The notes under the pieces were generated by a model that saw only the letters and a list, made by a program, of their open reading frames with translations, was not told the origin of the DNA and did not search any database. From positions 1 through 64,000 of the forward strand of contig JAHLWZ010000093.1 of the NCBI GenBank assembly GCA_020536535.1: a stretch of 64,000 bases of DNA. The letters are read 5' to 3'. Made by a program: the position numbers and the translations under genes. This document shows positions 49,769 to 57,392 of the stretch, piece by piece. Origin of the DNA: Pelomyxa schiedti (Eukaryota; Protista; Evosea). Each line of letters opens with the position of its first letter. Position 1 is the first letter of the stretch.

Positions 49769-51079
49769 TCATTCTACAAAAATCACATGTTGTTGCTCGT
49801 ATACATGCCAGTCCGGGGTGTATTCCAGAGCCAGGACAACAAAACCAGAAAGAGCATCCACCACACTCATTTCCTTGTTCGTGCCCTTTTCTGTGATTTG
49901 AAGCAGGAAGCCGCGGTCCACACCAATTACAAACGCCGTGGTATGCACAACCCTCAACGGTTGGCCTGTGTCATTGCAATCCCACAGTTCGTACTGCGAC
50001 TTCCAGTAAGAAATGCAGAAGAGTGAGTCACTCAATCGTGATAGGTCAAGGCCCTGTCCACGCTCAAGTGGGGTCACTTTGCCACTGGGATTCATCTCCA
50101 CAACAAATATCTGAGTGGAGTGCCCCATGTGTTGGTCCTGTATATACACTTGCAGAACACAAACCAACACTCCAGGTGTTCTTGTGTACAAAATGAACCC
50201 CTCCCGAGTGGTTCCTGTAGGCAAATCCCTGGCCACAGAGCACACCACGGTGAGGCTTCCACTTGAGAATGTCTGTTGCGCATCCACAACAAGGATCCTC
50301 TTTTCGTGTGTGGTGCCTGATTCCGCTGACCCCGGACGAATCAGCAACAACAGTTCGTCCGGGTTTGTCTTGCCCATCCCCAGAAACTCCGCACTCTCCG
50401 GCTTCGCTGTTACTCCCACAATCACACTCTGCGGTGCCGGCAGATCCCCACCCACGCCCTTCATCGGTCTCACCACGAGGCTCTGCAGGCACATGCGCTC
50501 CCTGTCCATGTCCAGCCCGCACCACCACTTCCTGTTGCAGTAGTAGCTCCCGTGGATCCCCCACGACGTCCCGCCCTCGGGGTACTCTAGCAGCAGCACC
50601 TCCACCCCGCCCAGGGTCGCGTACCCCCCCAGCCCCCCCGCGTCTGCCCGCCGGCGCGGCAGCCCCCCGGCGCCAGCAGCCATGTCCCTCAGCGCGTAGC
50701 CGGGGACCGCGCCCCCGGGGCGGCGGGCGATGTGGTGGTCGGCGTCGGCCCAGCTGGTGCCCTCGCTGCCGTCGTCCTCCAGGGTGGGCACGACGCCGCG
50801 GGGGGTGACGCTGAGGAGCAGCGGGGACACCCCGGCGTGGTGCACGAGGTTGTGGCGGTCGCCGCCCACGGGGATCACGAGGCGCCGCTCGGTGGAGGCC
50901 ACGCAGAGGTCCCACAGCATGCGGAGCAGCGGCTGGGTGAGGGCCCGCGGGGGGCTGCGGGAGCCGCACCGCGGGTGGGTCGACGTCGCGAGGGCGAGGA
51001 ACTGGTCGCGGGCACGCAGGGCAACGGTGACAACGGGCCGCGGTGCCTCCTTGTGGGATCTAAGTGTTGTGTTGCCCGT
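49769..51079 (-). CDS. Intronless ARDQ/HPRCG family protein; the conserved N-terminus lies upstream of the first ATG (possible ACG start at 51079)
   Basis: The frame is open from stop 51089-51091 through RARDQFLALATSTHPRCG to ATG 50920; LSRLSDSLFCISY, ELWDCN, VVDALSG match the family. Confidence 0.7.
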   Translation of the reverse strand, partial: TGNTTLRSHKEAPRPVVTVALRARDQFLALATSTHPRCGSRSPPRALTQPLLRMLWDLCVASTERRLVIPVGGDRHNLVHHAGVSPLLLSVTPRGVVPTLEDDGSEGTSWADADHHIARRPGGAVPGYALRDMAAGAGGLPRRRADAGGLGGYATLGGVEVLLLEYPEGGTSWGIHGSYYCNRKWWCGLDMDRERMCLQSLVVRPMKGVGGDLPAPQSVIVGVTAKPESAEFLGMGKTNPDELLLLIRPGSAESGTTHEKRILVVDAQQTFSSGSLTVVCSVARDLPTGTTREGFILYTRTPGVLVCVLQVYIQDQHMGHSTQIFVVEMNPSGKVTPLERGQGLDLSRLSDSLFCISYWKSQYELWDCNDTGQPLRVVHTTAFVIGVDRGFLLQITEKGTNKEMSVVDALSGFVVLALEYTPDWHVYEQQHVIFVE

Positions 51080-51233: not shown

Positions 51234-54200
51234 ATGGGGAACAGCAACCAAAGCACCAAGGCGCCTCCGTCTCCGCCTCCGACACCCCCGCCACGTTCTC
51301 GGAGCGTCGTTGTTGGTTACGATGAGTTCCAGAGATCCATCCGCGACCGCGACGCGTTCTTCGCGAGGCTGGGCCAGTCCGCCACAGTCAACGACGTGCA
51401 GAACTCGACGGGGAGCGTGGTCGTGGCAAAAAACTTCGAGCTCGTGAGATGCATCTCACACGGTTGCAGCGGTGTGTGTGTGGCTGTGACAGTCCCAACC
51501 AATCCAACACAATGAACAGATCACACACTCACACAAAGTAAGTAATTAAGTAATGATTTTATGTGAATACTGTGGGCACACCCACTACGACTGGACTCTA
51601 GACTGAGGACCCAACCTGGCTCAAGAGTCAAGAGATCCAACATCCAGAATAGCACGATAGCCGTGACGTCAGTTAGCACCTGCAACGCAAACAATAACCA
51701 GAGTAAATGAAGAATAATAGATACCCAAAGTTATCCCACTTTATTCCTTAGAAGACCGTCGACTACTACAATACGTATGTTAATCTTAATTACGTATTCA
51801 CATGTCGCACCACGGGTGCGATGACAGGGATTGTTTATGAGGTGAAGTGCATTGGGGAGGGGCACCCTGTGTTGTTCAGGGAACAGTCTTACGTCCTCAA
51901 GGCTCCCTTCAATTATGGTTTCACAACAACAAATATACTCAGTGCCTTTGAGGTATTTTCTATTCTTGTTTTACTGACTTTTTGTGTGTTAAACTGCTTT
52001 TGTATTATCTCACCTTGGTTTATGTGACTGTGCCGTCTTTGTTATGCCCTGTCTTTCTTTTTTCCTCCAGCACACAGAATGAATACATTGTTGCATCAAC
52101 ATTGGAGCCACACCCAAACATCAACCGATACTTCTGTCACTTCACAGACCGCATCCCACAAGAGTATTACAACCACCTCCCACCAGCTGCCAAGGAGCTG
52201 GCCTTCGACCCAGTTCAGAACAGGATGCATGCATGCGTGTGGGTTGTCCTCGAGCATCACTCTGAGACATTGGAACAGTTCCTGGCACACATCAACACCA
52301 TCACTTCTCCAAACAAACTTTCCCCCCAAACAACCACACCGTGGCCCATTGTTCACAAGTATTCAAGGGATATCTGTGCGGCTCTTGTTCATCTTTTCAT
52401 GAACCAAACCATTCACTTTGACATCAAACTGGACAACATCGTTGTCTCTTCTGTGAGTTACTGTTCCCCCCCATCTCATTTCGCACTTCCAAACTATGTC
52501 TTCCCCACAACTCAAACAACAACAGAACAAAGAACAAGTGATTCTGATTGACCTTGGCTGTGCAACAAAATTTCCAAGGGCCAACTCCAAAAGAAGGCAA
52601 TTTGAGATCAAAACACAGTCTGTCATTTCAGCAACAGGGAACCAAAGTCACAGAGCACCTGAGATCATCAATGGAATCGCACGATACAGGCAGAACCCTG
52701 ATCACTCTTCAACACTGTGCTGTGACAAGGTATTTTTGATTTAATAATGTGAAACGTCTCTCATGAACAAAACACAGCAACCATCATTTGAACTTGGGTG
52801 CATCCTGTTTGAACTTGCCATGTGTGGGAAGCACCCACTTCCAGGATACCCTGGTGGTTATGGCCCAAGCGGAAAGGTCACGTTCTCATTTGAGAGTGAG
52901 GAGCTGTTCCCCATGAAACCACCACAGTTCCCAAAGGAGTTCTGTGACATCGTTCATTCGTTGCTGCAGTGCGACCCAGAGAACAGAATGCCACTCTTGG
53001 AGGCATTTGATGTTTTGTTGAACATTGAGTCACCAAGCCCTTCTGAACTCCTCTCATTTTACTCTTGGGTTGTTCCTCTGACAGATGACGCAGGTTGCAA
53101 TACCTTTTGATTCTAAGATACAGAAGCACCCAACCCACCATACTTTTCCACTGACATTTGCAGGAACACTGACAAGCAAAGCAACATGTCAAATTCTTTG
53201 TGGTTCCCCCACAGAAGACTGTGTTGACACCCTCCACAAAGCACTTGATGTTGATCCCCTTTTTTCACCTGCTTTGTTGCTTTTGCATCATCTCTCTTCA
53301 TCATGTGACCAGCCTAAGAAGACTGACAGTCGTCATCAACAGGCAGCAGTTGAAGCATCACTGAGAGGCAAGACAGCATCGTTCACAGCCACAGACGTGG
53401 AGTTAACAAGAGCGGTCATCAACAAGAAACACAGAAACACACTCCCTGAATTGGTTTTGACAGCAGTCTGGACAAGGCACATTTCACTTGATTCTGAAAG
53501 TTTCCACAACGCCACCTTGTTGCTTTTGAAAAAGTACCCAACGACAACAGCAAGAGCAAGAGCAATCCAGCAGCAAGAACAACACCATCAACCAGTGGCC
53601 AACCTCTCCATTTTTCTGAGGAGCGTGATCAACACACGAAACAAGATGATGCTGGAAGCACTTTTTGAGTTGCAAGTTGGAAACATCGACTCTGCCCTTG
53701 CTCTTGTTGCCAATGCGTTCTCCCTGTTTGAATCCGAGATGATCAGCGCCACTGGTGTGCCCACCCACATTTTTTTTTCGTCCAACCACAAATATACCCA
53801 CAGATCGTAATTGTTACTGTGATTACCTGCCTGCTCTGTTATTCCTTGTTTGTCTCCGTCGTGTCATCAATGACCACGTGTCACTTCGTCAGCACATTCC
53901 AACATGCCTGTTGCCGGCTTTCTCTCGTGCTCTCTCCTCCTCAACGGAGGAAACGAGAGCACATTGCGTGCTTGTGCTGAATGAAACCAACGTGACACAA
54001 GCCCCACAGCAGCAGGAGACTCCATGCCACAACAAAGAATGGACAGACCTTGTGTCAACAGCATCATTGAAATCCAACATTCAACATCAATCAGCATCAT
54101 CCGCAACAACAGGTTCAGCCGAACAGTCGTGGTCCTGCATGTACTTTGTTGCACTGTGGGTCCAATTCGCTGGGGTTCTGTCACATCTCTGGGAATCTGC

Positions 54201-55079
54201 CATGAGTTTGGTGTTGGTGGTGTTGAGAAGGACACTCACAAGGCAGTGACACTTTATCAGAGGGCTGCTGATGCTGGTGATGCCATGGCAATGTGCATCC
54301 TTGGTCTGTGTTATGACAATGGTGATGGTGTCGAGAAGGACATTCACAAGGCAGTGACACTTTATCAGAGGGCTGCTGATGCTGGTAATGCCAGGGCAAT
54401 GTTCAACCTTGGTGTGTGTTATCAAAATGGTGATGGTGTTGCGAAGGACATTCACAAGGCAGCGACACTGTGGCAGAGGGCTGCTGATGCTGGTAATGCC
54501 ACGGCAATGTTCAACCTTGGTGTGTGTTATCAAAATGGTGATGGTGTTGAGAAGGACATTCACAAGGCAGTGACACTGTGGCAGAGGGCTGCTGATCCCG
54601 GTGATGCTCAGGCAATGTGCAACCTTGGTGTGTGTTATCAAAATGGTGATGGTGTTGAGAAGGACATCCACAAGGCATTGACACTTTATCAGAGGGCTGC
54701 TGATGCTGGTAATGCCATGGCAATGTTCAACCTTGGTCTGTGTTTTAAAAATGGTGATGGTGTTGAGAAGGACATCCACAAGGCAGTGACACTGTACCAG
54801 AGGGCTGCTGATGCTGGTCATACCACGGCAATGTGCACCCTTGGTGTGCGTTATCAAAATGGTGATGGTGTTGCGAAGGACATTCACAAGGCAGTGACAC
54901 TGTGGCAGAGGGCTGTTGATGCCGGTAATGCCAGGGCAATGAACCACGTTGCATGGCATTACTACAATGGAACTGATGGTGTTGACCAAGACGTAGACAA
55001 GGCAGTTGGATTGTGGCGTCGGGCAGCTGCCCTGGGTCATCCTGGTGCCACTGCCACACTGAAAGATCTCCGGCTTTGA
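51234..55079 (+). CDS. PINK1-like protein kinase fused to a helical region and 8 Sel1-like repeats; probable frameshift near 54170
   Basis: MGNSNQS start; ISHGCS, VLKAPFNY, EPHPNINRYFCHFTD, HFDIKLDN, IDLG, RAPE, ELGCILFE; C-terminal 36-aa LGxCYxNGDGVEKD repeats. Early exon structure is unresolved. Confidence 0.7.
54180..55070 (+). repeat. Eight Sel1-like repeats (108-nt unit)
   Basis: NLGVCYQNGDGVEKDIHKAVTL[Y/W]QRAADAG consensus; the middle units are near-identical at DNA level. Confidence 0.95.
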
Positions 55080-55378: not shown

Positions 55379-56016
55379 TCAGAGGAGGTTGCATCCACCC
55401 TTCTTCTTGGTTGCGGTCTTGACTGGGGGTGCAATCACACATCTGATGGCTTCGTCGAAGACTTCCTTGAGACCTTTCTGTGTGAGGGCCGAGCACTCCA
55501 TGAACTTCACGGCGTTTATCTCCTTGGCCTTGGCGATTCCTTGCTCGTAGGTTATGGGAGTGGCCTTGATCTTTGCGCGCTCGCGGGCCTCTCGGTCATC
55601 ACGCAGATCGGTCTTGGTACCAACGAGAAGGCAGGGGGTCTTGGGGCAATGATGGGATATCTCGGGGTACCATTTGCTGCTCACGTTCTCGTATGATGGA
55701 GGGCTAATCACTGAGAACGCCACGAGGAACACATCAGTCTGTGGGTATGAAAGTGGCCTCTGTTGCATAAATTGAGTCGATAATGAAAAGTAGTTAATTG
55801 GCAAGTCAAACATACGAGGCGGTCGTAGTCCTCTTGGCCGGCGGTATCCCACAAGCCGAGGTTGACGGGCTTTCCGTCGACCATGACGTTTGCGCTGTAG
55901 TTATCAAACACGGTGGGGATGTACTCAGTTGGGAAGGCGTTTGTTGTGTAACTGATGAGGAGGCATGTCTTGCCGACGGCTCCGTCTCCAACAACGACGC
56001 ACTTGATAGCTTGCAT
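55379..56016 (-). CDS. RAC1: Rac-family Rho GTPase, one intron
   Basis: [50 protein letters not shown], polybasic tail + CaaX (CNLL). Confidence 0.95.
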
Positions 56017-56215: not shown

Positions 56216-57330
56216 TCAAAGTGTCAGGCGCTGGTACAGGTACCAGACACCACAGATTGTGAAAATTAGAACCCCGGTCGCTGCGTCGCAGACGCTAAGT
56301 TCGTCAGCGGTTGTCTTGTGCAGAACCAGCTCATCACATAAACTCATGACTTGGTTCTCCACATTGAAAGAACGAAGGGGCGTGTGAGGGTTCCTCACGT
56401 CGTGTATGGTGCAACTGTTAGTGTTTTTGTCAGTGACGGCAAAGTAGCAATGCCCGATCGGGATGACCATCTGGAGTCCTAGTGCGAGTAGCTTCTGGCC
56501 GGTAGTGGCACATAGGACCATGCCCTGGTGCTTCGCATCGACTGCAAACAAGTATATATTCCCAGCAAAGGACCAGGCGCGCTTTGCTTGCAGTATTTCG
56601 AAGGTGTTCTCCATTACAATGGACATTTTTCCTGTTTGTTGAGACTTGGCCAGGTCCACAACAGAGATGAACTCGTGTCTGCCAACCACAATTAAATTGT
56701 CATCCACAAGGTCGGCAATGTTATACCCGTCGTAGAAAGGCACGGTCGTGGGCGGCAGAAGCAACTTGCCGGAATTCCACAGCAGCATCTTCCTGAGGTC
56801 CAGAACGACGACCCACTCCCTGCTGCACAGCACAGACACGCGCCTCACAGAGCTGTGCAACTCCACCTCCTCCATCCCGTCCAACCCCACGTCTGCTCCC
56901 CGCGGCATAGAAGCCATTGCCCACTCCTTGTGTCCTTCCTCCTCGGTCCATTCCACGTCCCTTACTGCCAGTTGGTACATGCGGCCGTCGCGGATCTCTA
57001 CGGCGAGCCTGTGGCCCGGCCCAGTCCAGCCCAGCGGGCGCGGGACGCACTCGCACACGAGGCGGGGGCCCCCGCCGAGGAGCCCGAGGGTGGGCGACAC
57101 CGCGAACGCGACGATGGTGGGGTGGCGGCTGCCCTCGATGCCCACCTCCACCGCCACCTCGGGCCCGCCGCCGCCACCACCCAGCGGCGGCCGATTTCGC
57201 TGAGCAGCGAGGGGGCGAGGGACCCGGCGGGGCTGCTGCCGGCGCCGCGGCAACGTCCCACAATCGAGGCCGCCCCGAGGGCCACAAACTGGGACCGCGC
57301 GTCGATCCGCACTAGGGACGGGGCCCTTCA
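56216..57330 (-). pseudogene. ARDQ-type family member with a frameshifted 5' end (pseudogene or assembly indels)
   Basis: IDARSQFVALGAASIVGRC...SEIGRRWVV is in the 56998..57312 frame, while EVAVEV...FAVSPTLGLL...VCDAATG is in the 56216 frame. In-frame stops lie just upstream of the motif. Confidence 0.55.
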
Positions 57331-57392
57331 TCAATGGAGGGTTCGGAGAAATAGCCTCAATTCATTGACAAAATTGATTCATGATACTGGCA

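Follow-up and report, generated by a model that had tools for sequence, protein, structure and literature searches.

The gene at positions 51234-55079 (+) of contig JAHLWZ010000093.1 from Pelomyxa schiedti (GCA_020536535.1) is a PINK1-related kinase gene in a new architecture and a large expansion, and the copy present here has been cut off from its C-terminal repeats by a deletion of about 150 nt. All coordinates refer to the window, the whole 64,000-nt stretch of DNA that was analysed. The preferred reading, to which a probability of roughly 0.8 is given, is that the family comprises cytosolic, probably N-myristoylated, non-RD (non-arginine-aspartate) PINK1-like Ser/Thr kinases, with a TPR-like domain and then a variable C-terminal module behind the kinase domain, and that the window copy is deletion-frameshifted. 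A first-pass annotation, made from the DNA letters alone, had proposed a PINK1-related kinase redeployed to membranes in a probably anaerobic amoeba. Its view of the host agrees with P. schiedti and the kinship with PINK1 stood, with PINK1 ranked first by both sequence profiles and Foldseek. The single redeployed kinase, however, gives way to one of at least 60-75 non-RD paralogs that lie nearer to uncharacterised PINK1-like kinases than to PINK1 itself.

Kinase Motifs and Their Conservation

Sequence reading resolves a split eukaryotic gene (Table 1) in which six phase-consistent GT-AG introns, measuring 356, 125, 73, 48, 70, and 49 nt from 5' to 3', separate seven exons. The gene was searched exon by exon, and spliced paralog proteins from NCBI stood in for the joined protein; the window gene's own NCBI protein was not found via cluster look-ups. 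Exon-sized blocks occur in matching order at about 29 of 33 paralog loci (tblastn with each exon peptide), with exon 1 kept as a block in 28 loci, and the exon junctions of the window gene are those of the NCBI spliced paralog models. The peptide of exon 7, which has the 49-nt GT-AG intron directly upstream, is likewise kept in paralogs.

The motifs quoted in the first-pass annotation (ISHGCS, LKAPFNY...ILSAF.NE, PHPNI, HxDxKxxN, DLG, APE, and the MGNSNQS start) were all found in place, two of them across exon boundaries: ISHGCS|G-IVYEVKC straddles the junction of exons 1 and 2, and YVLKAPFNY...ILSAFE|NEY that of exons 2 and 3. The gene also carries PHPNINRYFCHFTDRIP, HFDIKLDN, DLG, and APE, and the window copy lacks none of the residues required of an active eukaryotic protein kinase (beta3 Lys, helix-C Glu, HxD Asp, catalytic Asn, DxG Asp, and APE). 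Exon alignments of 24-27 paralogs show the catalytic residues to be invariant or nearly so. For instance, K25 is invariant in exon 2 (alignment A2, 27 copies), as are F114, D115, and N120 in exon 3 (A1, 25 copies) and G11, A44, P45, and E46 in exon 4 (A3, 25 copies), where D9 is nearly invariant; mean column identity in exon 5 is 80% (A4, 24 copies). Over the kinase exons, comparison of the window copy with its closest paralogs gave ratios of nonsynonymous to synonymous substitution rates (Ka/Ks) of 0.13-0.31. Since the catalytic residues are conserved in this way and the ratios lie in this range, the quoted motifs are not due to chance, and the comparison indicates that the family members are working kinases under purifying selection, not decaying repeats. 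Single exons of the window gene score below the cut-off of Pkinase PF00069, and the paralog P0001 scores above it (61.9 bits vs 31.7). The catalytic loop is of the non-RD type (HFD), and DLG stands where PINK1 has DFG.

Relationship to PINK1

Exon 3 alone has Pediculus PINK1 as its best PDB match (E 4e-4), in an alignment with one gap that spans PHPNI, F-x-DRIP, the beta4-beta5 insertion of about 25 residues, and beta5. The insertion that the first-pass annotation had singled out for checking is present and aligned to its PINK1 counterpart. In single-exon Pfam and PDB searches, exons 2 and 4 gave nothing with a family-specific signal, whereas exon 3 alone did; the PDB profile matches of exon 5 were GAK followed by PINK1, all weak and mixed. 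A family profile built from 13 annotated paralog kinase domains (A5) placed PINK1 in all of its top seven PDB matches (E 3e-15 to 5e-13), covering profile positions 10-324, nearly the full length. The runner-up was GAK (E 3e-12), which matched in the C-lobe only (positions 122-337).

A wider search with the exon-3 profile against 1.84 billion protein representatives (E<=1e-3) retrieved only 121 proteins, namely 24 Pelomyxa paralogs and about 97 unnamed kinases that come from metagenomes and a single sponge. These outside relatives score a median of 110 bits against the hidden Markov model (HMM) of the Pelomyxa family, compared with about 15 bits for ordinary kinases. When a profile of 36 of the non-Pelomyxa relatives (A7) was compared with the PDB, the first 12 entries were PINK1 (152-178 bits, best E 3e-51), and the next family, Aurora A, followed at 125 bits (2e-35), a lead of 50 bits for PINK1. 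PINK1 thus appears to be the nearest characterised relative of the unnamed group, for which no name or published description was found. The link between the Pelomyxa family and PINK1 therefore seems real but indirect, the family falling, by these profile scores, within or beside the unnamed PINK1-like group. One member of that group, P0048 (L055:1001-3511, metagenome, 836 aa), contains a ubiquitin-family domain (PF00240, 28.6 bits vs cut-off 25.4) and a SPRY domain behind the kinase, and SPRY genes adjoin it on the contig. A ubiquitin-like domain of its own in a relative of the ubiquitin kinase PINK1 is noteworthy.

Structural comparison gave the same ranking. The AlphaFold model of paralog P0001 (residues 1-720; predicted local distance difference test, pLDDT, 83; predicted template modelling score, pTM, 0.79) returned PINK1 in all of its top 22 Foldseek matches, with GAK/AAK1 at rank 23. 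In this model, two short helices lie in an insert of about 25 residues bounded by strands 143-150 and 177-184, and the predicted position of the insert is that of insertion 3 of PINK1. Other searches were less informative: a language-model atlas search returned generic kinase clusters only, the 11 close relatives found in a region search with a DNILVELDP-type stretch did not include PINK1, only generic kinases came from a word search that used the intermediate-family alignment, and the read-through open frames of paralogs gave no useful matches as queries. Taken together, sequence profiles and fold ranking point to PINK1 as the nearest known relative of the kinase.

It could be argued that the likeness is superficial, and that the family is a fast-evolving offshoot of another eukaryotic protein kinase (ePK) group, brought close to PINK1 by long branches and the chance gain of an insertion in the same loop. 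This explanation is improbable: the intermediate family drawn from the 1.84 billion proteins favours PINK1 by 50 bits over every other solved kinase, the leading 22 Foldseek matches are without exception PINK1, and the insertion agrees in position, nearly in length, and in F-x-DRIP. Still less probable, to the point of being a marginal option, is the proposal that the gene is the true PINK1 ortholog of the amoeba, having lost its mitochondrial targeting and moved to other membranes. PINK1 is indeed the best solved-structure match, and the insertion 3 equivalent, FNY, PHPNI, and F-x-DRIP are common to both. However, the family counts at least 60-75 paralogs, besides a second PINK1-like family of at least 35 copies, and it scores far above the PINK1 level against the uncharacterised PINK1-like kinases; the region behind its kinase domain looks TPR-like and shows no sequence similarity to the C-terminal extension of PINK1. 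Because of the copy number, the HFD loop, DLG in place of DFG, and the lack of a presequence or hydrophobic membrane segment, the window kinase is PINK1-related but not a PINK1 ortholog.

Organization and Variants of the Pelomyxa Family

The paralog count suggested in the first-pass annotation was carried out with exon 3, which has 75 matches in the 52-Mb assembly, most of them full-exon and at 50-97% identity. The family appears to be specific to P. schiedti, with at least 60-75 copies. Kinase and Sel1 repeats share one open reading frame (ORF) in at least 10 of the 12 paralogs examined, exon 7 running into the array with the layout …SWSCMYFVALW-(~50-residue linker)-G-x-I-x-W…SLG-I/L-CY…, and the NCBI paralog models also join the two parts; one of them, KAH3764441.1, carries the NCBI name "sel1 repeat family protein". 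The C-termini vary within the family, and most are Sel1 arrays of differing length.

Several members depart from this layout. In P0003 (KAH3763395.1; G000 C386:56581-57585 and upstream), the family kinase is followed by a second PINK1-like kinase (…VALKMMLNY…HCDIKLDN…). This second type is intronless, is present in at least 35-50 copies in the genome, and scores closer to the unnamed PINK1-like group than to the family of the window gene. The 1015-aa P. schiedti protein P0004 has, behind the kinase, a GTPase of the dynamin family (PF00350, E 1.4e-13) where other members have Sel1 repeats. Half-kinase paralogs were detected at L031:3277-5817 (G000 C960), L032:3322-5655 (C402), L033 on the minus strand (C463), and L034:3076-4803 (C396); each is a single ORF in which the N-lobe as far as beta5 (…VWVVLEHHHSETWDQF…) is fused directly to 13-20 Sel1 repeats, with an MGN start upstream. 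They cannot be kinases because the C-lobe is absent, and they may be decoys or adaptors. Another kinase-Sel1 member, P0017 (KAH3761753.1; G000 C508, L004/L035), is annotated as "GNAT family N-acetyltransferase"; this model probably merges a kinase-Sel1 gene with downstream GNAT-like ORFs in L035.

A Frameshift Separates the Kinase from the Sel1 Repeats in the Window Copy

The layout and motifs of the family are present in the window gene, and only in this copy does exon 7 fail to continue into the Sel1 array. The first-pass annotation had described one gene over 51234-55079 in which the kinase is fused to a C-terminal Sel1 array. Its motifs hold but its single reading frame does not, exon 7 lying in frame 1 and the Sel1 part in frame 0, which meet at 54157-54161; the fusion, in turn, is correct for the family and not for the window copy. 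Frame 1 is used through …FVALW (W codon 54157-54159) and frame 0 from GPIRWGSVTSLGICHEFG (G codon 54159-54161). The DNA alignment with paralogs showed that the linker is deleted between two CTGTGG-like microhomologies, the missing piece being 154 nt relative to the paralog on C406 and 145 nt relative to that on C418, both of the form 3n+1. A 3n+1 deletion shifts the frame, and the eight Sel1 repeats are therefore not fused to the kinase in this copy; the frame that opens at the ATG runs for 764 codons and closes at the TGA at 54247-54249, ahead of the first Sel1 repeat.

Over 53914-54244, the junction included, the window is matched without mismatch or gap by a contig from a single-cell Illumina RNA library made from a different sample, an agreement that argues against both an assembly error and splicing there. 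A second RNA-library contig matches 53803-53943 exactly and its match stops at the predicted acceptor of intron 6, so that it looks like spliced message. Expression of the window gene is suggested by these contigs, although RNA libraries can carry DNA. The other three sequencing runs contain intron sequence, that is, they are DNA, and are probably the source of the assembly. A paralog contig from the RNA library (run X1) begins with the Smart-seq template-switch oligo at window position 53453, inside exon 6, which points to a cDNA whose 5' end is internal or to degradation of the template. An intron that would repair the frame was considered and rejected, as no GT…AG pair of 3n+2 length spares the conserved coding sequence and the RNA-library contig is unspliced in this region.

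The alternative that the window copy is intact is unlikely. It would require that the assembly is wrong by one base in the GGG run at 54158-54160, or that the mRNA regains the frame, for instance through use of an alternative acceptor at 54126, by which exon 7 would be skipped and the Sel1 frame retained. One additional G would give …FVALW-GPIRWGS… in a single frame, amplified DNA was read by Nanopore sequencing for the assembly (PMC8887013), the Sel1 frame stays open over 351 codons and encodes eight good repeats, and use of the AG at 54125-54126 would preserve the phase set by exon 6. Nevertheless, the Illumina contig from a different sample reproduces the junction without a difference or gap, the deletion is 3n+1 against both nearest paralogs, and no exon-7-skipping joint was seen for the exact copy in the RNA-library contigs. 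The most that the frameshifted copy can thus encode is a kinase of 764 residues that lacks the Sel1 repeats; otherwise it is a young pseudogene.

N-Terminus, Middle Domain, and Sel1 Array

The PROSITE-type myristoylation pattern after the initial Met is G-{EDRKHPFYW}-x(2)-[STAGCN]-{P}, with a small residue fifth from Gly2. The window copy starts G-N-S-N-Q-S, in which a Gln occupies this critical position, so that the start misses the consensus and the "myristoylation-type start" of the first-pass annotation does not apply to this copy. It does apply to relatives: 16 of 28 paralogs begin with MG, mostly as MGN-x-x-S/T, and most MG starts, such as MGNSQST, MGNSNSS, MGNRAST, and MGSSTST, match the consensus. 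After MGNSNQS, exon 1 continues with a Pro-rich stretch and then an amphipathic helix, with neither a hydrophobic stretch nor an Arg-rich presequence, in agreement with the earlier statement that a mitochondrial presequence is missing.

The region behind the kinase looks TPR-like and has no sequence similarity to the C-terminal extension of PINK1; a profile of this middle domain found no match in the PDB. The Sel1 array, with its eight repeats, reaches 297.9 bits against a PF08238 cut-off of 30.7, and its DNA matches itself within the window at 88-91%.

Table 1. Exons of the PINK1-like kinase gene and associated features in the 64,000-nt window of Pelomyxa schiedti contig JAHLWZ010000093.1.
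Feature	Position	Strand	Content
Exon 1	51234..51471	+	ATG, MGNSNQS, Pro-rich stretch, predicted N-terminal helix, start of glycine-rich loop (ISHGCS); ends in phase 1
Exon 2	51828..51952	+	beta1-beta3, invariant Lys (YVLK), FNY motif, start of helix C; preceded by the 356-nt intron
Exon 3	52078..52452	+	Helix C Glu, PHPNI, ~25-residue beta4-beta5 insertion with F-x-DRIP, beta5, helix E, catalytic loop HFDIKLDN
Exon 4	52526..52729	+	DLG, activation segment, GN-x-x-H-x-APE; Pkinase match to profile positions 134-176
Exon 5	52778..53093	+	C-lobe helices F to I; weak Pkinase match
Exon 6	53164..53754	+	First two thirds of the all-helical middle domain (~290 residues)
Exon 7	53804..54249	+	Frame 1; remainder of the middle domain (…YLPALLFLVCL…SWSCMYFVALW), 30 out-of-frame codons, TGA at 54247-54249
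Deletion junction	54154..54162	+	CTGTGG microhomology; change from frame 1 to frame 0 (paralog DNA alignment and frame bookkeeping)
Eight Sel1 repeats	54159..55079	+	Frame 0, stop at 55077-55079; PF08238, E 1.6e-91
DNA tandem array	54218..54941	+	6.7 copies of a 108-nt unit, each equal to one Sel1 repeat, 90% alike (Tandem Repeats Finder)

Neighbouring Genes

A two-exon gene for a Rac/Rho-type small GTPase (Ras family, E 1.4e-24 for the first exon) is located at 55379-56016 (-), convergent with the kinase gene and about 300 nt past the Sel1 stop codon. In addition, long ORFs at 49769-50920 (-) and 56216-57334 (-), without a Pfam match, flank the kinase gene and may belong to a lineage-specific family; close to the 5' end of the first ORF, between 50500 and 50999, G+C content rises to 76%.

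Proposed Function and Significance

The Sel1-repeat solenoid is the usual C-terminal module in the family, and together with the TPR-like domain it could form a sensor or scaffold that binds partners or ligands and either brings substrates to the kinase or regulates it. An N-terminal lipid would anchor the kinase to membranes, from which it could signal. The variable repeat number, the swapped C-terminal modules, and the half-kinase decoys would then yield a fast-changing repertoire for lineage-specific signalling; a fast-evolving sensor repertoire is proposed because it fits the family size and all of these variants. Such a repertoire could survey prey or obligate prokaryotic endosymbionts, in a role analogous to that of non-RD receptor kinases in innate immunity, and this is a reasonable guess since P. 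schiedti is described as living with obligate prokaryotic endosymbionts (PMC10579272). In the window copy, a recent microhomology-mediated deletion of 3n+1 nt has taken out the linker and put the eight Sel1 repeats out of frame.

Five points weigh against the reading of the family and of its window copy given here. The profile built from Pelomyxa sequences only puts PINK1 just about 10 bits ahead of GAK, and the placement beside PINK1 comes from profiles and a fold ranking rather than from a tree that includes PINK1. Transcription rests solely on RNA-library contigs, in which DNA can be included. The Sel1 frame is fully open in the window copy, so a rescue by some unseen mechanism could occur. 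Finally, that the Sel1 repeats act as sensor or scaffold, that the N-terminus is lipidated, and that there is a connection with symbionts or immunity are points drawn by inference only.

PINK1 acts on ubiquitin Ser65 at damaged mitochondria and is regarded as having one purpose, that of sensing mitochondrial damage in animals. P. schiedti retains its mitochondria only as reduced, anaerobic organelles. Its family of about 70 PINK1-like kinases, which are non-RD and cytosolic and carry Sel1/TPR solenoids, shows together with the unnamed group linking it to PINK1 that the PINK1 fold with its insertion has other uses. The family also offers natural variants with which the roles of insertion 3 and of the non-RD loop can be probed, and recombinant paralogs would allow a direct test of ubiquitin phosphorylation outside mitophagy. 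It is doubtful that the family and the wider PINK1-like group keep the chemistry of PINK1 and phosphorylate ubiquitin or ubiquitin-like domains; the hints are only that the insertion 3 equivalent is kept and that one metagenomic relative has a ubiquitin-family domain. If this were true, phospho-ubiquitin signalling would be older and broader than mitophagy, and an amoeba with reduced mitochondria would have turned it into about 70 sensors whose Sel1 arrays pick the place or the target. The window copy alone is of minor interest, as it shows the decay of a family member via a microhomology deletion between kinase and repeat array. In a literature search that did not extend to all journals, no paper describing PINK1-like families in protists, or the Pelomyxa family, came to light, and the genome paper of P. 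schiedti (PMC8887013) does not mention Sel1, mitophagy, or a kinase-Sel1 family and refers to kinases only as metabolic enzymes. The window adds two things, the frameshifted state of this copy and the link through the unnamed PINK1-like group.

Comparison with Known Systems

The closest known system is PINK1 (PTEN-induced kinase 1, a kinase linked to Parkinson's disease; kinome family Other/NKF2), with solved structures from Pediculus (6EQI/7T4K), Tribolium (7MP8/5OAT), and human (9EIH). PINK1 and the Pelomyxa family share the G-C-x-G/A-x-V-Y-E glycine-rich loop, K-x-x-FNY after beta3, PHPNI, a beta4-beta5 insertion of about 25-30 residues that starts with F-x-DRIP (insertion 3 of PINK1), D-x-G-C after the Mg-binding Asp, G-N-x-x-x-x-APE, and a helix preceding the kinase domain. 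However, PINK1 is a single-copy RD kinase (HRDLKSDN) with DFG, whereas the Pelomyxa family is multicopy and non-RD, with DLG; PINK1 has an N-terminal presequence and a membrane segment, in place of which the family has an MG start and neither element; and PINK1 ends in a short helical C-terminal extension, whereas in the family a TPR-like domain of about 290 residues and Sel1 repeats follow the kinase.

The nearest relatives outside Pelomyxa are the unnamed PINK1-like kinases (P0025-P0121), such as XP_062506567.1 of Corticium candelabrum, which match exon 3 alone at E 1e-15 to 1e-3. They share with the Pelomyxa family the non-RD loop H-L/F-D-x-K-L-D-N, C-x-x-x-G-x-P after beta2, FNF/FNY, PHPNI, G-N-x-x-H-x-APE, K-Q-x-x-F/W-E-L-G, and H-P-L-x-x-Y-P. 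They differ in that most are 300-550 residues long, intronless, and devoid of Sel1 arrays, and in that DFG is kept. GAK/AAK1 of the NAK family, the second-best solved relatives, have no beta4-beta5 insertion and no N-lobe motifs in common with the Pelomyxa family.

The repeats of the window array resemble those of the Sel1-repeat proteins (PF08238), which include SEL1L/Hrd3 and the bacterial LpnE, EnhC, and HcpA-C: both have canonical 36-residue repeats that build an alpha-solenoid of the protein-binding kind. Known Sel1-like repeat (SLR) proteins, however, are adaptors without a kinase, whereas in Pelomyxa the array serves a kinase family as its C-terminal module and, in the window copy, lies out of frame. 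A functional analogy can be drawn with non-RD receptor-like kinases that carry repeat sensors, namely plant leucine-rich repeat receptor-like kinases (LRR-RLKs; FLS2/Xa21) and IRAK/Pelle, with which the Pelomyxa family shares the non-RD loop, a solenoid-bearing kinase, lineage expansion, and fast repeat turnover. These kinases belong to a different ePK group and are, as a family, not homologous to the Pelomyxa proteins, which lack both a signal peptide and a membrane span; the repeats are LRR in the FLS2/Xa21-type kinases but Sel1/TPR-like and cytosolic in Pelomyxa.

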